Sequence record: NC_025447.1
DNA: 64,000 bases
Direction: 5' to 3' (one strand)
Positions 3,706-13,523 of this stretch are shown here, piece by piece (within the stretch, counting starts at the first letter, position 1; each line of letters begins with the position of its first letter). The notes beneath the pieces are model-generated. The model had not been told where the DNA came from. It did not search any database and saw only the letters and a list, made by a program, of their open reading frames with translations. A program made the position numbers and the translations under genes.

Positions 3706-4815
3706 TTATTTTGGTAAATCAATTTTAGTAAAGACTGCAACATCCTCGATTGCACCTGGAATGGCGTAATACGATCCAGTACTATACACATCTCCATTTT
3801 TGGTTAATATCGATGTCAAACCATCACTAAAAAGAACATCCCTAATCTCACTAACTTCAACGGGTAATTGTAAATTGGTAGCACTATATATAGCACCAGT
3901 TTGAGAATTGTTTAATCCCAAACCACGGTTCGCCCCAACACCCTTCTGATATGTACTAGTAATTACCATTTGTGTAGCAGTATTTAAGGCAGGTGAATTC
4001 GTCATAAACAATGGAGAACTATTAGGCAAAGTACTTACAGGAACTGCACGGAATGTAGTCGTACCTGAACTAAGAAAGTTTGGAGTTTGACCACATACGA
4101 AATATGATGTACCATTATAGTAATTGAATGCATTACCACCAATGGCTGCATCGATTACACCAGAACTACGCAATCCCCAAGTGTTAATTTGTGTTTGGTT
4201 CCCCGTACCATGCTGTCCACTACTATTCCATCCAGAACTATATAGCTTATTATCTAATGTAAGATACATACTATCATTCGCATTGGTCATTACTTTACGA
4301 ACGTTCGTAGCACATTGAGTTAATGTGTAAATTGATGAGGAACCAATACCCAAAGAACCACGATATCCATTATCTCCTGCACCATAGAGTACTGAATTAG
4401 TGCTAAGTACAAATATTAAACCATTTGTACATACAATATTAGCAATTTCACTTACTGGTATAGCATTGGTAAACCAATTAGTCCTTTCAACTAATACAGT
4501 ACTGTAAGAAGTAGTTGTAGAAGATGAGAACCAGTACGTTTGACCTGATGTCCATATCGTATTATCATTTTTAATAATAACAAGTGTACGATCACCCACG
4601 AAAAAATTAGAAACATCTGCACTTACTAATATCCATGAAGATACCGTGTTGGTATTACCATTTCCAGATTCACCACCTTGATTTCTACCTATGTAATATA
4701 AATCATGTGAATCAGTCAATAAGAATTGACCTTGTGTAGAAGCACCAACTTTAATTATATTTTTAGGACCAGGTACAATATTTCCGTACTTAACCATTCT
4801 TGCAAAAGGTAACAT
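3706..4815 (-). CDS. RCC1/BLIP-II-like repeat protein, MLPF-leader family
   Basis: Motifs LYGAGDNGYRGSLGIG, LYSSGWNSSGQHGTG. Confidence 0.8.
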   Translation of the reverse strand: MLPFARMVKYGNIVPGPKNIIKVGASTQGQFLLTDSHDLYYIGRNQGGESGNGNTNTVSSWILVSADVSNFFVGDRTLVIIKNDNTIWTSGQTYWFSSSTTTSYSTVLVERTNWFTNAIPVSEIANIVCTNGLIFVLSTNSVLYGAGDNGYRGSLGIGSSSIYTLTQCATNVRKVMTNANDSMYLTLDNKLYSSGWNSSGQHGTGNQTQINTWGLRSSGVIDAAIGGNAFNYYNGTSYFVCGQTPNFLSSGTTTFRAVPVSTLPNSSPLFMTNSPALNTATQMVITSTYQKGVGANRGLGLNNSQTGAIYSATNLQLPVEVSEIRDVLFSDGLTSILTKNGDVYSTGSYYAIPGAIEDVAVFTKIDLPK

Positions 4816-4889
4816 AATTCCCTCCTTTATTCATTATACTATATTTAATACAAAAAAGAAAAGCCAGTATCAAGTACTGGCATATTACA

Positions 4890-6032
4890 TTATTTCCACG
4901 GTAGAAGGGAATCGGGGACTCTGGTTGGAACTCTCACGGCTGGAACATTTCCAAGTTCAGCCAAACCACTCATATACAAATTGTTATTTTCATCAATTAT
5001 CATTGAATAGAAATTATCAATTACGAAGCCTGAAATTCGTCTTCCTTCTAATGCATCAAGAACCATTTCGGTGAAAGTTAATATATTTTCGGATGTTTGA
5101 TTAACACCACATGCACCATAGGTATTTCGACCACAAGTATATAACTTATTATTATTTTTAACAACACATCCATTCCCTTCGTTGTTGGATAAACCACCCA
5201 CCAACTCTATTTCACCTTGGAATGATAAATTGGGAATTAATGTACTCATTGGTACTGCTGATACTCTACCTACACCAGCTTGACCATATGCATTTGGTGA
5301 AGCAACCTTCACTGAACCATCATTAAGAAATATATATGAAGTACGGTATGTATTTACAGCTTGTATAGCATTGGTGATCGTATTGTCTTTTGTAAAACTT
5401 AATATATTTGATGTTGTTGTACTACCAGGAGCAACAGTATTTCCTGCATACCAATAGGAACCATCATCAAGAACTAACCCAGTACTGAGCAAAGAACAGC
5501 CATAACTTTTAACATTTTCTATAGTGCTGTATCTGAACGATGTGACATTAGCTGTTGACGCGTTACCAAATACACCACCCTCGCCAGCACCACAGTAGAA
5601 CCATTTTCCATTTTTCAAAAATACACGCAAATTCTGTCCAACAGCAATACCATCAATATCATCAGCACTGACACCAAAATCAGTGAAGTACTGGGTTACA
5701 TCAATCCAAACCCCATTTGTATTTGTTCCGATTTGTGGCATTACTATACTAGCACCTGTGAACCAAATAGTTCCATCATTCTTAATGGCAATGGAACCAA
5801 GAACACCACCCCAGTAACGTTCAATATTATTATTCACACGGGTCCATACGGTGGATGATTGTAATGAACCATTACCACCTTGTCCAAATGAAGATGAACC
5901 ATACCAGTACAAGTCACCATTAACATGCAAATAAAAACGAGTATTATAATTTGCTTGTAATCTATTTTTAAATAGAGGTTTTGGTTCTGGTGCTTCATTT
6001 CCGTACTTAACCATTCTTGCAAAAGGTAACAT
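4890..6032 (-). CDS. RCC1/BLIP-II-like repeat protein, MLPF-leader family
   Basis: Motifs YGSSSFGQGGN, ASPNAYGQAGVG, CGRNTYGACGV; ends PTRVPDSLLPWK like 2496-3635. Confidence 0.8.
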   Translation of the reverse strand: MLPFARMVKYGNEAPEPKPLFKNRLQANYNTRFYLHVNGDLYWYGSSSFGQGGNGSLQSSTVWTRVNNNIERYWGGVLGSIAIKNDGTIWFTGASIVMPQIGTNTNGVWIDVTQYFTDFGVSADDIDGIAVGQNLRVFLKNGKWFYCGAGEGGVFGNASTANVTSFRYSTIENVKSYGCSLLSTGLVLDDGSYWYAGNTVAPGSTTTSNILSFTKDNTITNAIQAVNTYRTSYIFLNDGSVKVASPNAYGQAGVGRVSAVPMSTLIPNLSFQGEIELVGGLSNNEGNGCVVKNNNKLYTCGRNTYGACGVNQTSENILTFTEMVLDALEGRRISGFVIDNFYSMIIDENNNLYMSGLAELGNVPAVRVPTRVPDSLLPWK

Positions 6033-6106
6033 AATTCCCTCCTTTATTCATTATACTATATTTAATACAAAAAAGAAAAGCCAGTATCAAGTACTGGCAT
6101 ATCAAA

Positions 6107-7255
6107 TCACTGCAAAAATGACATATCGACTTCGGTATAATTAAGAACGTTCTGTCCAGCAATACCTCCCATTACTACAATTGAAGCCCCACAATAATAT
6201 AACTTCGAAGTGTCAGTAAGTATAAGTGAACCAGATGGGGTGCGTACCAAATTACACGAAGTATTAAACGAAGTATATGAAGGGGTATAAGAGTACTGAT
6301 TAATATTATTACCAACACCTAATTGACCAGACGAGTTGCTTCCAGATGCATAAAGTACTTCATCACCTTTAACTATATGTGACGCCATGTTACCAACACA
6401 AGTATATAAACTATAAACTCCTGAACTCAATAATGTTGGAGTTTTGTATTGTATATCTGTAGATGAAGAAGTACCACCTGTGCCAAATTCGTTCCCGTAT
6501 TGTGCACCGAACTGTTTACCACAAGCGTACAAATTATTATCCGATTTAATAAAAAATGTACTCTGATAACTGACATTACAATCTATAACATCCGAAGAAA
6601 TCATCGTCACCCCAGTAATAGAAGTTTGATTGCCTGTACCTAACTGATAGTAATAGTTAAAACCACAACCCCATAAAGTATTATCTTCTTTTAGGTATAT
6701 GTTACCAACTGCCTTTTTAACCGAAGTTATAGTATCTACCCTTTTGAATGTGTTAAAAGAATTAATGTTTGTACCATCACCAAATGATGATAGGTTAGAG
6801 TTATTGTTAGCTCCACAACAATACAATGTACCATCGTTTGTTATCAAATTTACCTTCATATCATTAAAACTACTCATGTATTTTATATCAGAAACATTAA
6901 TACCACCTGATGTTATCCATGTAGTACAGTCCGTCCACAAAGTTTTTCTATCAGTTACACCAGTGAATGCCTTCGTGTTGCCAGTGATAAAAACTTTTCC
7001 CGTACCTTTCTCTTCGTACAATTGACAATCACTACTGTTATCTTCCAATAGAACTCGTTTAACATTCTCCGCACAAAGAATAAATTTACTCGATGCTACA
7101 CCTGTTCCAGTACCCCAATTCGTCGCAGAAGATGCATACAACTTATCAGTATAAGTATCATGAAGATACATGGAATCACTGGAATATATTTTAAAACGTC
7201 CATCATCACCAGGGGCAATATTCCCGTACTTAACCATTCTTGCAAAAGGTAACAT
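6107..7255 (-). CDS. RCC1/BLIP-II-like repeat protein, MLPF-leader family
   Basis: Start corrected; motifs CGFNYYYQLGTG, SGSNSSGQLGVG. Confidence 0.8.
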   Translation of the reverse strand: MLPFARMVKYGNIAPGDDGRFKIYSSDSMYLHDTYTDKLYASSATNWGTGTGVASSKFILCAENVKRVLLEDNSSDCQLYEEKGTGKVFITGNTKAFTGVTDRKTLWTDCTTWITSGGINVSDIKYMSSFNDMKVNLITNDGTLYCCGANNNSNLSSFGDGTNINSFNTFKRVDTITSVKKAVGNIYLKEDNTLWGCGFNYYYQLGTGNQTSITGVTMISSDVIDCNVSYQSTFFIKSDNNLYACGKQFGAQYGNEFGTGGTSSSTDIQYKTPTLLSSGVYSLYTCVGNMASHIVKGDEVLYASGSNSSGQLGVGNNINQYSYTPSYTSFNTSCNLVRTPSGSLILTDTSKLYYCGASIVVMGGIAGQNVLNYTEVDMSFLQ

Positions 7256-7303
7256 AATTCCCTCCTTATTCATTATATCATATTTACCCAATAAAGAAAA
7301 CCC

Positions 7304-7332
7304 TTGACATCCTTTCAGTACTGTTGTACTAT
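7304..7332 (+). promoter_or_regulatory. sigma70-type promoter for family A array, divergent from the MLPF array
   Basis: TTGACA-17-TACTAT, AGTACT in spacer; AAGGAG RBS before ATG 7358. Confidence 0.8.
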
Positions 7333-7357
7333 AGAAGGAATATAAGGAGAACTACAC

Positions 7358-7585
7358 ATGACAAATACTCTTAAGTACTACCTCAATACTCTAAATGAAC
7401 TAGAGTACGGGGAGTTTCTCTCGGATAGTTCGTGGCTAATTGAGCTAAAAAATTATAATAGTCCAGGATGCACCCTTATGATGAACAATGCAATTGATAC
7501 CCTCATTGTGAGTATTTTACACAGCAACATCTGCGGGGATAGCAATAAACAATTATCAAAAATCTTAGTACTGCTATCTATATGA
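7358..7585 (+). CDS. Small hypothetical protein, family A (divergent)
   Basis: RBS; N-terminal KYYL, C-terminal hydrophobic ILVLLSI. Confidence 0.65.
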   Translation: MTNTLKYYLNTLNELEYGEFLSDSSWLIELKNYNSPGCTLMMNNAIDTLIVSILHSNICGDSNKQLSKILVLLSI

Positions 7586-7785
7586 ATATCGAACAGTACT
7601 ACATCGATGCACTACCAACAAAAGGTCTACGAGAAAGCCTACTGTATACACAAAATACTATTATACACTACAAACGTTGTCCTAAACTCCTGAACTCGTA
7701 CAGGAATAATATCATAAGAAATGCTTTACAAGGGGCAGAAAGTATGCAATACTATTATATCCTTGCCCTTTTAATCGAGTACTAA
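7582..7785 (+). CDS. Small hypothetical protein, family A
   Basis: EQYY...YYILALLIEY. Confidence 0.75.
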   Translation: MNIEQYYIDALPTKGLRESLLYTQNTIIHYKRCPKLLNSYRNNIIRNALQGAESMQYYYILALLIEY

Positions 7786-7786
7786 T

Positions 7787-7996
7787 ATGAATACTGAACA
7801 TAAAGAATTCTACACCAAATACCTTAGCAACGAAGAACAATTGTTTCTAAGGAGTGTATCACCTTTAAGTATAGATACACCACACGCCAGAGATTGCTTT
7901 AATAATTGTATACGTAGTACTCTAGAAGCAATCGAATGTAATAACAAAAATATTATGTACTCTGGTTTAATAGGACTAATATATTTCTATGAATAA
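7787..7996 (+). CDS. Small hypothetical protein, family A
   Basis: HKEFY...FNNCI...LIGLIYFY. Confidence 0.75.
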   Translation: MNTEHKEFYTKYLSNEEQLFLRSVSPLSIDTPHARDCFNNCIRSTLEAIECNNKNIMYSGLIGLIYFYE

Positions 7997-8183
7997 TCAT
8001 AAAGATTTCTATTGTAGTAAACTACCCAAACAAGAACAGCTATCATTCTCTTTAGCACCACCTATGAGAAAGGATAATCTGTATTATAATTACGATTTCA
8101 GGATGGTGACACGTTATGCAATAGAACATACGTTCCCTGCAACTAAGTACCGCTCTATCCTGAACCTCATCTTTAAGTTCTAA
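7989..8183 (+). CDS. Small hypothetical protein, family A
   Basis: HKDFY...ILNLIFKF. Confidence 0.75.
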   Translation: MNNHKDFYCSKLPKQEQLSFSLAPPMRKDNLYYNYDFRMVTRYAIEHTFPATKYRSILNLIFKF

Positions 8184-8235
8184 AAGGTACACCAGGGACC
8201 GAGTACTTTAATATAGTAAGGCTAATTACATTATA

Positions 8236-8421
8236 ATGAATCATATAAGCTACTACTACCAACAACTATCCGACAGAGACAAGTACAGTCACAACTCCCA
8301 TGTGTGGTACTACAAACGCGGCAGTATAAGAGACAAACAACATTACTTCTGTATTTCTATTAAAGAAGCACTAACAACTAAGTACACGTACCGAGCAGTA
8401 CTTAAACTTATTGAAATGTAA
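8236..8421 (+). CDS. Small hypothetical protein, family A
   Basis: HISYYY...YRAVLKLI. Confidence 0.7.
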   Translation: MNHISYYYQQLSDRDKYSHNSHVWYYKRGSIRDKQHYFCISIKEALTTKYTYRAVLKLIEM

Positions 8422-8429
8422 GGAAGAAA

Positions 8430-8612
8430 ATGAATATAGAATTCTATTTAACTAAACTACAACACGCCGAAAGATTCAACTTCAATAAGTTCAATATTTT
8501 CTACAATTGCGGGAACAAAAAAGATAAACACACCTTCCTATATGTCGTCACAAGAGATGCACAAAACGAAAAGTACACATACAGAGAAGTAATGAAACTA
8601 ATCGCTATTTAA
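8430..8612 (+). CDS. Small hypothetical protein, family A
   Basis: IEFYL...YREVMKLI; AAGGAAG RBS. Confidence 0.7.
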   Translation: MNIEFYLTKLQHAERFNFNKFNIFYNCGNKKDKHTFLYVVTRDAQNEKYTYREVMKLIAI

Positions 8613-8620
8613 GGAATACT

Positions 8621-8800
8621 ATGCAACAATTCTATATAGAACGTATAACCATAAAAGACCGTTTCATGTACGACACCTTCGTTGATTACTACAACCTAGG
8701 AACAAAAAGTACTAAAAATATTAATCTCAATAGCTGCATTTATGCTGTACTAACACAAGATAATCCCTACAGGGAAATCCTCGCACTGGCATCTATATAA
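8621..8800 (+). CDS. Small hypothetical protein, family A (59 aa, not in ORF track)
   Basis: AAGGA RBS; MQQFYIERI...NSCIYAVL...YREILALASI. Confidence 0.7.
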   Translation: MQQFYIERITIKDRFMYDTFVDYYNLGTKSTKNINLNSCIYAVLTQDNPYREILALASI

Positions 8801-8810
8801 AGGAAACCAA

Positions 8811-9482
8811 ATGAAACTTAATGCACACAGCAAACAATACCTTAAGCACTTTAAGTACCTCAATAGTATTCAGGCAGAATCCGTTACATCTGCATATACG
8901 TATCACCCGAATGTACTAAAGAAACGAAATAAAAAGGAAAAATCCAGTACAAATGGAGTTAACGTATCAAAGAACCTTGAATTGTACATGAAGAAAAATA
9001 ATATAGCTGTTCATTATATGAATATCTATAATACTGATTTAAAAGTATTGAGTACTAATACGAGCACGAAGGTACTAAAGAACGCATCCTTCATCATCAA
9101 TATGCAGTTGGATAATACCCCGTGCACTTTAATGCTATACTTCGGGAATACATACTTCTTCGGGAATTGTAACACCTCCCACGATGTCAATACAGCACAA
9201 TTCCAAATGGGTGGCATATACTCTACTGATGCAGAAAAAGTACACGAGAATATGCACTTCTGGCAAGCACAACGTACAGAAGAAACTAAATCAATTGTAG
9301 ATTTCCTCAAAGAACTAGAACACAAAGAACTACAGGAAGAAGAACTATTCATGTACAGTACTGTAATCGATAATCCAGTACTCTATAAAAACGCGTACAA
9401 TCTGACAAAACATGTACAGGAAATTATCAGTACTAATAAGAAAATGCATCACCTCATTACGTATATTACAAACTATGTATAA
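8811..9482 (+). CDS. Hypothetical protein carrying family C motif
   Basis: AAGGA RBS; EEELFMYSTVID near C-terminus. Confidence 0.7.
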   Translation: MKLNAHSKQYLKHFKYLNSIQAESVTSAYTYHPNVLKKRNKKEKSSTNGVNVSKNLELYMKKNNIAVHYMNIYNTDLKVLSTNTSTKVLKNASFIINMQLDNTPCTLMLYFGNTYFFGNCNTSHDVNTAQFQMGGIYSTDAEKVHENMHFWQAQRTEETKSIVDFLKELEHKELQEEELFMYSTVIDNPVLYKNAYNLTKHVQEIISTNKKMHHLITYITNYV

Positions 9483-9657
9483 AGAATACTATATCTCTAA
9501 ACTACCCGTGCAGCAAAAATACTTTGCTGCATACAAAGTTCTTCTCATAACTCGTGCCGCTCGATCTAACTACATGAATAGCGTAAAACGTGCTATAGAA
9601 AATGATGACGCAATGAACCAGTACTATAACATTTTACTACTAATATATAAGTACTAA
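9475..9657 (+). CDS. Small hypothetical protein, family A
   Basis: Start corrected; MYKEYY...YYNILLLIYKY. Confidence 0.8.
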   Translation: MYKEYYISKLPVQQKYFAAYKVLLITRAARSNYMNSVKRAIENDDAMNQYYNILLLIYKY

Positions 9658-9667
9658 AGAGAACAAC

Positions 9668-9850
9668 ATGCACAAAGAATACTACAGGGATAAAATACCT
9701 ATGCATCTCCAGCACCATATACCAACAGAACCAATAGGAATAAAAGATCACGCAAAGATAATGTTCCAACAATGTACTAAGTACACGCTCATATACGATG
9801 ATAATCCATATATGCTGTACTACGTAGTAATGCTAACATTCAGGTACTAA
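9668..9850 (+). CDS. Small hypothetical protein, family A
   Basis: MHKEYY...FQQCT...LTFRY. Confidence 0.8.
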   Translation: MHKEYYRDKIPMHLQHHIPTEPIGIKDHAKIMFQQCTKYTLIYDDNPYMLYYVVMLTFRY

Positions 9851-9851
9851 T

Positions 9852-10043
9852 ATGAATAACCACAAAGAATACTACATAGAGAAACTCCCAATGTATCTCC
9901 AACACCTTGTACCAACAGAACCATTGGGTATAGAAAAAAACTACGAAAAAGACTACTTCATTCAGTGCACTAAATCCTCGATATATATTGAAGACTATAA
10001 TCGAGTACTGTATCACATCCTTTTACTAATATATAAGTACTAA
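9852..10043 (+). CDS. Small hypothetical protein, family A
   Basis: HKEYY...FIQCT...LLLIYKY. Confidence 0.8.
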   Translation: MNNHKEYYIEKLPMYLQHLVPTEPLGIEKNYEKDYFIQCTKSSIYIEDYNRVLYHILLLIYKY

Positions 10044-10044
10044 T

Positions 10045-10227
10045 ATGCACAAAGAATACTACACACAATTTCTCCCCAGCATTTTTGAACACTACGCCAG
10101 ATATAAAGTCCCTCTGGATAACGATTTGGCAGTACTGGGATTCAATAACTGCATAGAACGAAGTATAGAAAATAGTAGTAGTTATGACCAGCTATATAAC
10201 ACTATCCTACTTATATTCAGGTACTAA
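10045..10227 (+). CDS. Small hypothetical protein, family A
   Basis: MHKEYY...FNNCI...LLIFRY. Confidence 0.8.
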   Translation: MHKEYYTQFLPSIFEHYARYKVPLDNDLAVLGFNNCIERSIENSSSYDQLYNTILLIFRY

Positions 10228-10228
10228 C

Positions 10229-10417
10229 ATGCATAAAGAATACTACACAAAATATTTCCCAATGTACCTCAGAACTAATCTATTAGATAAACCTCGCGGT
10301 ATCAATGCACAAAATGATAAAGTGTATTTTACTATGTGCACTAAAGCATGTATACTAGATTTTGACAGCTACCATCGAGTACTGTATCATACCCTGTACC
10401 TAGCTTTCGTATTCTAA
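10229..10417 (+). CDS. Small hypothetical protein, family A
   Basis: Start corrected; MHKEYY...FTMCT; close to 9852-10043. Confidence 0.8.
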   Translation: MHKEYYTKYFPMYLRTNLLDKPRGINAQNDKVYFTMCTKACILDFDSYHRVLYHTLYLAFVF

Positions 10418-10426
10418 GAGAACAAT

Positions 10427-10612
10427 ATGCATAAAGAATTCTACTTAAGCCATCTGGATCTAAACTCCCAAATGCTTATACCACTAATCCCAATAGATAT
10501 CAAGGATAAGAAAAATACCGAACAATTCATTTACCATACACAGTGTGCGATCACCCCAAATTACATTCCATATGAATTGTACTACATTCTCGCCCTAATA
10601 TATAGGTACTAA
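10427..10612 (+). CDS. Small hypothetical protein, family A
   Basis: MHKEFY...LALIYRY. Confidence 0.8.
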   Translation: MHKEFYLSHLDLNSQMLIPLIPIDIKDKKNTEQFIYHTQCAITPNYIPYELYYILALIYRY

Positions 10613-10613
10613 T

Positions 10614-10799
10614 ATGCATAGAGAATACTACACACAATTTGTTAAAGGGAACTACAAACATGCCGTACCCAGAACCCCTTTAAATTCTCATGACCCAAGT
10701 ACTATATTCTTGTTTAATGACGCAATACGTACAGTACTCAATACTAAAGATGAAGATGTGCAGTACGTATTCTTACTATTACTTATATACAGACACTAA
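10614..10799 (+). CDS. Small hypothetical protein, family A
   Basis: MHREYY...LLLIYRH. Confidence 0.8.
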   Translation: MHREYYTQFVKGNYKHAVPRTPLNSHDPSTIFLFNDAIRTVLNTKDEDVQYVFLLLLIYRH

Positions 10800-10804
10800 C
10801 TAAT

Positions 10805-10987
10805 ATGAATAAAGAACATAAAGAATTCTATATAAGAAAACTAACATTCGTCCCCGTAAGAATATATAAAGAATGCGACCCAAGATTATACCTATGGCAC
10901 TTCAATGAGTGCATAAAAGATTCTATATACCCTAAGAACTATAAAGAACAATTGTGCTCAGTACTAACACTAGTACTATCATATTAA
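10805..10987 (+). CDS. Small hypothetical protein, family A
   Basis: HKEFY...FNECI...LVLSY. Confidence 0.8.
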   Translation: MNKEHKEFYIRKLTFVPVRIYKECDPRLYLWHFNECIKDSIYPKNYKEQLCSVLTLVLSY

Positions 10988-11002
10988 TTAATAGAGAATA
11001 CT

Positions 11003-11194
11003 ATGTATAAAAACTTCTATATAAGTAAACTAAAAGAAAATGAACAAGTATGGATTAGATCTATAATTCCACTGGCATTTAATAGATATGCATTTAACAG
11101 ATGTACCGAGATTGCTATAGACCCTTATAATATTAAAGAGAATGTACAGTATAATCAGTACTACTATATCTTAATGCTTATATATAGGAAGTAA
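11003..11194 (+). CDS. Small hypothetical protein, family A
   Basis: MYKNFY...FNRCT...LMLIYRK. Confidence 0.8.
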   Translation: MYKNFYISKLKENEQVWIRSIIPLAFNRYAFNRCTEIAIDPYNIKENVQYNQYYYILMLIYRK

Positions 11195-11821
11195 TTAAAC
11201 ACAAGTAGACAGGGGAAGCTCCTAGTGAACAACCTTTATGTACAGGCGAATTGTTAAAATTCAGCCTGGACAAATGCGATCACTAGGATTCTCCCCAGGC
11301 TAAACCCCGTAATCATAGGTAGTCATAAGTAATCATATATAAACATTTAAGTAATCATTTATAATCACTGTAGTGATCAGTAGTGATCAGTAGTGAGTAC
11401 TAGAGTACAGGAATGTTCACGTTTAATCAAGAACGTAGCAGTACTGATATGCCACTAAGTAGGCAGAGGAAGTCTGCCGTACTTTGTAGTTTCCAAGCTC
11501 CTTTTCCATTTTGCAAATTACATCAAATGTAATCAAAAGTAATCACGCAATGATTAGTACTGAATTATTACTTTCACCTTAATTTCAATTACCCCTTTAC
11601 CCTTCGGGGTAAAATTCAATTACCCCTTGAGGCTCCAGCAAAAAGTTGGTTAGTACTCCATCCTAAATCTCGATCCTAAAAATTTTGGAGTACCTATGAA
11701 ATAAAAGTTGGATCTTCGAAAGTTGAAATTTACGTTGGGACATATAGGATTTGTGGGATATAATGAGTTTTGTAGCGATACAGATTATACGATTTCAGTA
11801 CTGAATAATGAAAGAAAGCTA

Positions 11822-11849
11822 TTGACATTATGATTCAGTACTGTATAAT
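11822..11849 (+). promoter_or_regulatory. sigma70-type promoter with no downstream gene
   Basis: TTGACA-16-TATAAT with AGTACTG just before the -10. Confidence 0.75.
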
Positions 11850-12221
11850 GTTCTACATAGAGAGATGAGTTGCTGCGAACAATTCATTTACTCTACCTCC
11901 TGTCGTGAGACAGTACAGAAAAGATAGTTCCTCCTGTGGTGGTACATCTTTTTGAACCTCATATGAAAATCGTAATAACAGTACTGATATTAACAGAATG
12001 GTGTCAGTACTGATTTTAATCTAAAGCATTATGCCACCAGCTTGTGCTGGTGGATTCCCTCTAACAGTATTCAGTACTACATGATAGTCTTCATCCTCCT
12101 ACAGTAACAGTGAGGGCTATTGTGGCAGTACTGAATACTCCCTTTCAAAAGATAGATCTATGGTATAGTACTGACGGATTTTGGGCGTAGTAACCCTAGG
12201 TTGAATTTAGACGTAGAGATG

Positions 12222-12360
12222 TCTAGACCTCCAGATGGCTGGAAGTAAAGATGGCTATCCCTCTAGGCGGCTGGATGGCTAGATTTCTAGATGGCTGTAC
12301 TGCTAGACGTTTGGACGGCTAAACGGCTAGATGGTTACACGTCTGGATGTATAGACGGCT
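12222..12360 (+). repeat. Cluster of about 8-9 degenerate (A/G)GA(T/C)GGCT repeats
   Basis: ccagatggct, aagatggct, taggcggct, ggatggct, ctagatggct, tggacggct, aaacggct, tagatggtt, tagacggct. Confidence 0.7.
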
Positions 12361-12544
12361 AAATCAAAATTTTTATTTTATTTTTTCCAATAGTTCCCCT
12401 ACCGCGTGGGGATGGTTTCCCCGCAGTATCTGGAGTTAGATTTTTCTGAATCTGGAATCATTATCCCCGTTTTCGCCTGGTATGTCAACCGTCTGGATGA
12501 ATAATTTTAAAAAATAATCTAGTACTGAATTTTGGGCGTAACTA

Positions 12545-12614
12545 TGCACCCGGTGGGCTAGAGTCTTTCTCGACTTGATAAAAATATTATAGCAGTACTG
12601 AATTATAAAAGCAA
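12545..12614 (-). ncRNA. Gene-less promoter unit with two-hairpin CCCACNGGGTGC motif (copy a)
   Basis: TTGCTT-17-TATAAT then GTC-GAGAAA-GAC and CTAGCCCACCGGGTGC. Confidence 0.5.
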
Positions 12615-12684
12615 TAGCCTGGATGTAAAAAGTTTTAATTAATTTGCTTGTCATCCTGGGGCGTACTATGGTACTATGATTCAG

Positions 12685-12727
12685 TACTGAGAAAGTGCTA
12701 TGACCTGCTAAGGTGCGGGAGTGTATC
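12685..12727 (+). ncRNA. Degenerate copy of the two-hairpin motif
   Basis: GAGAAA loop then ACCT-GCTA-AGGT-GC-GGGAGTGTATC; probable promoter TTGTCA at 12648. Confidence 0.35.
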
Positions 12728-12760
12728 CTTTTTAAATTTACTGAATTTTGGGCGTAATTC

Positions 12761-12829
12761 CGCACCCCCTGGGGTATCCGCTTTCTCGCGTCTATGTAGT
12801 AATTATACGCTTTTTTAGTACTGAGTCAA
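12761..12829 (-). ncRNA. Gene-less promoter unit with two-hairpin motif (copy b)
   Basis: TTGACT-16-TATAAT then CGC-GAGAAA-GCG and ACCC-CAGG-GGGT-GC. Confidence 0.5.
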
Positions 12830-13160
12830 TAGCTAAAAACAAAATAATTGAAAATAATTTAACGCGTTTAAACGGCCCGTAAAGCCCTGGTTAGCTGGTG
12901 GCGGTGCAAATGTATAGCTTAGGTGTATTAATGCGTTAGAATGCGATTGAGGACGTTTTACGGGGTATAGTACTGATTCAGTACTGAATAGTAGTACTGA
13001 AAGATTGTTCTCCCTGGATTGTTCCAGTACTCCTATATAGAAAGAAAACTATTTTAAAAGTATTTGTAGAAAGTACTTGCAAAGTATTGGGAAAGGTGTA
13101 GAATGTTTTACATCGAGACGGGGGAAACGCTCCCGTTGCACTTTAAAAGAGATTAAAACG

Positions 13161-13523
13161 ATGGCGACTCAAATCAATACTATCATGCTTAACCTGGTTT
13201 CTTTCCGTGAAGAGATGAAAGATCTTCCCGCTGAGACTGTACGGATTCACATTGCAGCTTATCGGGAATTGATTGCAATGCTGCCGCTTAAGCGTGAACA
13301 GTATGCCGCTACTGCTATGCTCGATGCAATGATCCATAAGATGATCCAGACTGATTTAACGATGGCTTATCAGTACATGGGCGAAATGTTTGCAGTGTAT
13401 AGCAAGCCAGTACCAGGAATGGAAAGTACAGAAGTATTGCACGGCTTAAACTTAAAACAAGATGCATGGGATAATATGCCTCGTTTCCTGGTATGGGCTG
13501 ACAGTGGCAAGATTTACGAATAA
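13161..13523 (+). CDS. Early hypothetical protein
   Basis: Start corrected to MATQIN; own promoter cassette. Confidence 0.75.
   Translation: MATQINTIMLNLVSFREEMKDLPAETVRIHIAAYRELIAMLPLKREQYAATAMLDAMIHKMIQTDLTMAYQYMGEMFAVYSKPVPGMESTEVLHGLNLKQDAWDNMPRFLVWADSGKIYE

Follow-up and report, generated by a model that had tools for sequence, protein, structure and literature searches.

What is the function of a conserved stretch of phage DNA that lies between two genes and encodes none itself? Escherichia phage 121Q (NC_025447.1; 348,532 bp; genus Asteriusvirus), to which the region is 100% identical, has such an unannotated gap between the plus-strand genes PBI_121Q_265 and PBI_121Q_266. It covers positions 11195-13160 of the window, the 64,000-nt stretch of DNA that was analysed; window positions, used below unless a record is named, equal record positions minus 124,000. 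An initial annotation had proposed a replication origin and/or a physical genome end at this place, reasoning from a switch in G/C skew. Our analysis supports the second proposal: the gap is very probably the junction of unique DNA with a long direct terminal repeat, followed by a conserved non-coding control leader. The physical end stands, with seven relatives starting at the base that corresponds to window 11458, and the bidirectional origin marked by skew does not.

The gap was found in 42 related records, at 86-92% identity. Some of these records contain it twice, and the gap must therefore lie in a terminal repeat. The two copies in phage G17 lie 350,149 apart, which gives a repeat of 20,668 bp with a boundary inside the gap; its authors had noticed this repeat from a doubling of read depth (PMC6563267). 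The records of G17 (reverse strand), CRJP21, ELP-22, E9.1, vB_Ec-M-J and BF17 all start at the base matching window 11458, and the repeat of vB_Ec-M-J is annotated as 1-21,525. The seventh relative is fEgEco12, whose ends were determined with PhageTerm and confirmed by restriction digests (repeat of 20,993 bp; PMC13070987); its right-hand repeat starts at record position 353,741, the same base once more. PhageTerm was also used for Sharanji, with a repeat of 20,668 bp (PMC11895373). Weak support comes from contigs of relatives, for which two runs gave about twofold depth to the right of ~13.0-13.5 kb.

These boundaries can be carried over to 121Q, whose record was deposited permuted and without the second repeat copy, so that the repeat demonstrated in the relatives is absent from it and the end is unannotated. 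Both boundary sequences of the relatives' repeats (fEgEco12, G17, Sharanji and vB_Ec-M-J) recur in 121Q, near-identical over tens of bases and in the same gene context. The terminal repeat of 121Q is thereby predicted to be window 11458-31638, 20,181 bp present at both ends, and its virion DNA to measure 368,713 bp, compared with the 348,532 bp deposited. During packaging the terminase would cut between 11457 and 11458, as it is seen to do in the relatives. Terminal repeats of about 20 kb have already been published for relatives; the new annotation is the end itself. Placing the true ends of a reference jumbo-phage genome bears on its annotation, on engineering and on models of early infection. 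The predicted right boundary, for its part, falls within a gap of 250 nt, shortly before a consensus-like promoter.

Conservation among 10 genomes changes sharply at the cut. The DNA on its left is riddled with indels, with a hypervariable stretch at 11340-11440; invariance begins 12 nt before the cut and persists beyond it. A recognition site spanning the cut beside a homogenised repeat would look like this. Over most of the gap conservation is 0.85-1.0, which equals or exceeds that of the flanking genes. The non-coding hub of ~1.9 kb described initially is borne out, with zero annotated genes between 11194 and 13161. The gap does contain open reading frames: one of 109 aa on the minus strand, two of 41 and 56 aa, and a micro-ORF of 18 aa. 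Several automated annotations list them as genes; all were rejected here, being broken or drifting non-synonymously in relatives. No tRNA genes were found, and Rfam 15 covariance models matched nothing, either in the window at the gathering threshold or in the region with E values up to 1.

Candidate signals for the cut lie on both sides of it. The RTAATCA repeats pointed out earlier have copies at 11309, 11329, 11351, 11361, 11529 and 11539. Six in 300 nt make up the densest cluster of the 348-kb genome (mean 0.26, 99th percentile 2), and all six share one orientation, with 10-22 nt spacing, at -149 to -97 and +72 to +82 from the cut. The repeat itself opens with a hairpin, and fENko-Kae01, a Klebsiella phage of a different genus, likewise begins with an inverted repeat. 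We infer that the helically phased boxes and the terminal hairpin are recognition and processing signals of the packaging cut; by analogy with the recognition boxes that flank cleavage sites in other phages, the small terminase subunit may have a role here. The spacing RTAAT-N5-RTAAT (11309-11367 and 11529-11545) also resembles direct-repeat sites of the OmpR family, for example those of CpxR. The remaining repeats of the initial annotation are present as well. Those of the form TAGTGATCAG (11369-11398) are specific to 121Q and fall within the most variable stretch. The 14-mer direct repeats occupy 11584-11597 and 11615-11628, and the hairpin between them has a 7-bp stem (11596-11602 and 11607-11613) around a TTCG loop. 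Counted from the left end, this hairpin occupies nt 139-156, and its sequence does not vary among close relatives.

The skew switch from which the origin had been proposed is real. In 2-kb windows skew runs from -0.10 to -0.24 left of ~11 kb and from +0.02 to +0.28 on the right, and cumulative G-C has its local minimum at 11676 (11.65 kb in the initial annotation), 218 nt from the predicted genome end. It is also correct that plus-strand genes on the left are C-rich: the GC skew at third codon positions is -0.31 in genes 249-265 versus 0.00 in genes 266-289. Over the full genome, G is in excess on the plus strand almost throughout and the cumulative curve climbs steadily, dipping locally only twice (record 116.9-135.7 kb and 280-320 kb). 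When the genome is rotated to the predicted end, the curve goes up over 330 kb and then down over 18.5 kb. It has no V shape, and the bidirectional origin deduced from the switch is not supported. The dip that ends at the gap consists of minus-strand RCC1-like genes plus genes 249-265, and the 'wrong' skew of the latter is due to the odd composition of a 17-copy paralog family. The switch therefore marks a junction of gene blocks; it is a by-product of gene orientation and one paralog family, and skew is no evidence for origin function. The family itself (window 7358-11194) comprises 17 tandem small paralogs of ~60 aa, one of them of 223 aa, with N- and C-terminal motifs in common, very few codons starting with G, and C-rich third codon positions.

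Inside the end, the non-coding leader (11458-13160, ~1.7 kb) has a layout common to Asteriusvirus, the fENko-Kae01 group and Mimasvirus CBB, despite little other nucleotide similarity. Counted from the end, the order is a 9-bp stem block, an inward promoter, a structured segment that ends in a strong hairpin, a box array, an AT tract, a hairpin, a leftward promoter and further promoters (Table 1). Across genera the promoter lies ~300-390 nt and the box array ~650-900 nt from the end. In fENko-Kae01, the ends of which were set by PhageTerm, the 9-bp stem block is 93% identical and lies 86-128 nt from the end, and the block 12758-12809 is 92% identical. The inward promoter has counterparts at 331-359 in fENko-Kae01 and 294-322 in CBB, and the leftward promoter 12488>12460 at 921>893 and 927>900, respectively. 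The structured element downstream of the inward promoter has a folding energy of -65.9 kcal/mol (z -5.45 versus shuffles) and compensatory changes in nine pairs (8 sequences). In the hairpin after the AT tract, the stem sequence varies between genera and the pairing is kept, with compensatory changes in 6 of 10 pairs (6 phages from at least four genera).

Table 1. Coordinates (window) and basis of the features of the gap and of the terminal repeat predicted for 121Q
Feature	Position	Strand	Basis or remark
Predicted left end of virion DNA, start of direct terminal repeat	11457/11458		Seven relatives
Predicted right boundary of terminal repeat	31638/31639		G17 end and fEgEco12 record 20993 map there
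Last 263 nt of unique DNA, outside repeat	11195-11457		Sequence and conservation
Inverted repeat	11206-11228/11280-11302		Outside repeat
Four RTAATCA boxes outside repeat	11309-11367	+	Sequence
Conserved 12 nt adjoining cut	11446-11457		Alignment
Putative terminal hairpin, 6-bp stem, 5-nt loop, starting 5 nt from end	11462-11478	+	Invariant in 9/10 genomes
Two inner RTAATCA boxes 10 nt apart, with inverted copy	11529-11555	+	Inside repeat
Most conserved leader block (0.96-0.99)	11633-11740	+	Alignment
9-bp stem around two ATCCTAAA repeats	11652-11694	+	Within most conserved block
Predicted inward promoter, perfect sigma-70 consensus (12/12), 16-nt spacer	11822-11849	+	Conserved in 10/10 genomes
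Structured ~200-nt element, putative early non-coding RNA	11856-12062	+	Downstream of 11822-11849 promoter
Two inverted Chi octamers forming 8-bp hairpin	12034-12053		Octamers at 12034 and 12046
19 tandem 8-bp boxes in perfect register, consensus AGAYGGCT	12209-12360		Likeness to MetJ 'met box'
AT-rich tract directly after array	12361-12395		Same order in CBB
Hairpin between invariant CCGCG and GCAGWAT	12402-12429		Covariation
Predicted leftward sigma-70-like promoter (11/12), aimed at hairpin, AT tract and array	12460-12488	-	Sequence
Two 69-nt repeat units	12523-12591 and 12739-12807		12602-12829 promoters lie around them
Predicted leftward promoters	12629>12602 and 12829>12802	-	Divergent/convergent set
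Predicted rightward promoter	12648-12677	+	Divergent/convergent set
Predicted first early promoter	13077-13104	+	AGTACT directly upstream of -35 hexamer
PBI_121Q_266, first gene of repeat	13161-13523	+	Annotation

A close parallel for this arrangement may be the left-end leader of T7 (nt 1-924), which consists of the terminal repeat, hairpins, CCTAAAG arrays, the leftward promoter A0 and the strong host promoters A1-A3. Both phages have a gene-free leader before the first gene, hairpins near the end, short repeat arrays, and one leftward plus several inward host-type promoters. Even a TTCG-loop hairpin is common to the two, 66-82 nt from the left end in T7 and 139-156 nt in 121Q. The differences are that the T7 repeat measures 160 bp as opposed to 20 kb, and that T7 has neither an 8-bp array resembling met boxes nor Chi. 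An 11-nt identity (T7 208-218, 121Q 203-213 nt from the end) is no more than chance would give and was not counted. The 121Q leader appears analogous to the T7 left-end leader and, as set out below, to the untranslated repeat region of T5.

On the T7 model the left end would enter the cell first, because ~95% of the genes are directed away from it, the pattern seen in T7; the leader would then be the first DNA in. Host polymerase would fire from its promoters, the consensus host-type promoter would make the structured ~200-nt RNA, and the divergent promoters would serve small-RNA units. As a compact set of cis elements, the leader bears on how large phages with long repeats cut their DNA, protect its ends and start expression. 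We found no description of the leader architecture, the Chi pair or the met-box array in the literature, the papers on the relatives' repeats included.

Some points count against a genome end followed by a control leader. The end of 121Q itself is placed by homology with relatives, and the two repeat boundaries have no common motif beyond chance. The leader promoters and RNAs are predictions, and promoters are no more numerous in the region than in shuffles (15 versus 15.0), which is why our promoter reading rests on individual conserved sites and not on their count. Which end enters first is likewise deduced from gene direction, by likeness to T7. The junction of unique DNA and terminal repeat is the reading that we prefer.

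Protection of the ends may be the task of Chi sites. The genome has 29 of them versus ~2 expected (~16-fold enrichment). Of the inverted pair in the leader, the copy at 12034-12041 is on the bottom strand and faces the left end, 577 nt away; nine top-strand sites in the repeat face the right end. These are exact octamers, each oriented toward the DNA end that it would protect. The orientation rule is established RecBCD biochemistry, and by this rule Chi would guard both ends, the 12034 copy being oriented to stop RecBCD arriving from the left end. RecA loading at Chi would favour recombination from repeat to repeat, yielding circles or concatemers. The same pair is present in fENko-Kae01, at 484/496. 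The hairpin that it forms was annotated as a terminator by the authors of G17. Its loop (12042-12045) is inverted in UB, PBECO4 and SD-15 (TTGT versus ACAA), which a cruciform or hairpin-loop flip would be expected to produce. Apart from the pair, eight of the repeat's top-strand sites are at window 12894, 18155, 22321, 23782, 24700, 27078, 28486 and 29947, and half of the genome's top-strand Chi sites fall within this 5.8% of its length.

The most distinctive element of the leader is the array of 8-bp boxes, 100-280 nt downstream of the leftward promoter 12488>12460. The boxes agree with the met-box consensus AGACGTCT, the operator unit of the methionine repressor MetJ, at 5.8 of 8 positions on average. 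By the same scoring, the metJ/metB and metF operators of E. coli K-12 reach 5.2-6.0; elsewhere in the 121Q genome a stretch of 16 boxes attains 3.25 at most, and shuffles never come near the array. Position frequencies in the array correlate with those of 10 natural boxes at r = 0.86, compared with -0.30 to 0.11 in the seven other registers. The array thus resembles E. coli MetJ operators in its 8-bp register, CTAG-type junctions, per-position preferences and match per box. It differs from them in having 19 boxes where they have 2-5, in using G as often as T at position 6, and in not overlapping a promoter.

Array size ranges from 16 to 25 boxes in 15 Asteriusvirus genomes, which differ by whole boxes. 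Like arrays are present in CBB and XbC2 (15 boxes each), in fHe-Yen9-04 (12 boxes) and in the T7-like phage PGT2 (8 boxes, 38-101 nt from the end), and T5-like phages of Vibrio, Aeromonas and Providencia have the same 8-bp arrays in their repeats (17 boxes in Pontus). A scan of 50,697 phage records gave 84 array matches, with hosts in Enterobacterales, Vibrio and Aeromonas and one Xanthomonas record. The same boxes, often with the same two final units, recur in three unrelated phage families. These likenesses lead us to infer that a host repressor binds the array, the likeliest being MetJ with S-adenosylmethionine (SAM). We found no paper that links MetJ or met boxes with phage ends.

A phage protein might bind the array instead, be it the small terminase subunit, a ribbon-helix-helix protein of partition type or an initiator, with the likeness to met boxes arising by chance; this is a possibility to be taken seriously, though we would not bet on it. 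Short tandem repeats beside fixed ends are usual in terminal-repeat phages, the CCTAAAG arrays of T7 among them. Two observations speak for such a protein and against MetJ: position 6, a MetJ contact position, is G in half of the boxes where natural met boxes have T, and the array-bearing phage XbC2 is recorded on Xanthomonas, which is not known to have MetJ. All other hosts of array-bearing phages belong to orders in which MetJ is known, and the recurrence of the boxes and their last two units in three unrelated families counts against a phage protein. Nor does 121Q offer a clear candidate: no match to a MetJ-family protein was found in it, and for ribbon-helix-helix proteins there was a sub-threshold match only, inside a 756-aa frame.

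Host factors as binders gain from what relatives carry at the same place. The Klebsiella phages fENko-Kae01 and RaK2 are without the met-box array and have clusters of sequences resembling Fur boxes in the same slot, matching a second host repressor. At a threshold of at least 13 of 19 matches, fENko-Kae01 has 10 (clusters at 711-800 and 1034-1060) and RaK2 19 (clusters at 1140-1680), versus 1.0 and 1.7 in shuffles. The best reach 16/19, a score attained by 2 of 500 shuffles and above the 13 of the fepA-fes control site. T5 has no met-box array (at best 4.75/8 over 4 boxes) and does have Fur look-alikes of 15-16/19 at record 9549-9712, inside its annotated injection stop signal. Over T5 record 4500-11000 there are 25, versus 4.1 in shuffles. 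These T5 look-alikes also lie near the classical shear point. Host factors are favoured because two different cassettes of host-repressor type occupy one conserved slot, which argues for binding of host factors by the slot cassettes, as far as their resemblance to known operators can tell.

On this basis we tentatively propose that the array is a MetJ-SAM platform, one of several interchangeable host-repressor cassettes at a fixed slot of the terminal-repeat leader in three unrelated phage families. Phages of E. coli, Pectobacterium, Erwinia, Yersinia and Vibrio would have met boxes in the slot, whereas Klebsiella jumbo phages and T5 would have Fur boxes; this distribution, too, is a suggestion about which we have more doubt than confidence. 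MetJ-SAM on the array would couple early leader transcription or the start of replication to host metabolism, or the array would titrate the repressor. If so, DNA sites alone would let a phage read or manipulate the methionine/SAM or iron status of its host, or hold the entering end. Cassettes that bind host repressors would be a new phage means to sense or rewire host metabolism, and the long-unexplained injection-stop region of T5 would join a general principle.

The same elements can be read as a replication origin of another kind, which could hold alongside a genome end. The boxes would then serve as iterons for an initiator, the DNA would unwind at the AT tract (12361-12395), and the 12488>12460 promoter would supply an R-loop primer as at T4 oriF/oriG. 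We regard this as unlikely, even though the order array, AT tract, covarying hairpin and promoter is conserved in at least three genera, with these origin-like features ~750-970 nt inward of the end and the local skew minimum 218 nt from it. The replication proteins of the phage group are T4-like, which also fits (PMC5259590). Like T4 oriF/oriG, 121Q has a predicted promoter 60-130 nt upstream of an AT tract; the 121Q promoter is of host type and those of T4 are middle-mode, and 121Q has the box array and hairpin in addition. Against an origin stand the cumulative skew without a V shape, its dip being explained by gene direction and the paralog family, and the lack of DnaA boxes (up to 1 mismatch) in the region. 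The replacement of the supposed iterons by Fur-like boxes in the Klebsiella relatives, moreover, fits host factors better than a phage initiator.

The T5 parallel raises a further alternative, an injection stop. Entry would then begin with the right end, a set of small early genes (~18-20 kb) would be expressed, and transfer would pause at this region in the right-hand repeat until early proteins release it. In T5 an untranslated repeat region of 1.2-1.7 kb straddles the repeat boundary, with 270 bp outside (10.1101/866236). The 121Q gap is likewise a conserved untranslated repeat region straddling the terminal-repeat boundary, with 263 bp outside. It shares with untranslated repeat region 3 and injection stop of T5 more than 1 kb of conserved non-coding DNA with repeats, palindromes and boxes resembling those of host factors. 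Further agreement comes from the 8-bp arrays in the repeats of T5-like Vibrio, Aeromonas and Providencia phages, the Fur-like boxes in the T5 stop-signal region (9653-9712) and the nine Chi sites of the repeat that face the right end. The T5 region, however, sits at the other boundary relative to the entering end, and all repeat genes and ~95% of the genome of 121Q point rightward, which fits left-end entry as in T7 and the main pre-early operon of T5. The paired DnaA boxes in inverted repeats that T5 has were not found in 121Q, and two-step transfer has never been reported for this phage group. We regard an injection stop as rather improbable, and left-end entry with a control leader behind the cut is the account that we retain. 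Among the T5-like phages, Vibrio phage Pontus has three DnaA-box-type sequences directly beside its 17-unit array (520-600 and 700-835).

Two short sequences recur in the gap. The palindrome AGTACT has 903 copies in the whole genome, 7.6 times the ~120 that base composition would predict. No other palindromic hexamer is nearly as over-represented, and in the terminal repeat AGTACT is 3-6 times denser. As a promoter element, it showed no flanking consensus genome-wide beyond C-AGTACT-G; in early promoters it is found directly upstream of the -35 hexamer. The gap holds 20 copies, mostly in the form AGTACTGA with a single orientation; 11 of the 20 do not vary across 10 genomes. The 12-mer ATTTTGGGCGTA has three exact copies, at window 12178, 12529 and 12745, each just after a AGTACTGA box. 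The first of these directly precedes the box array, and the same order is seen in CBB.

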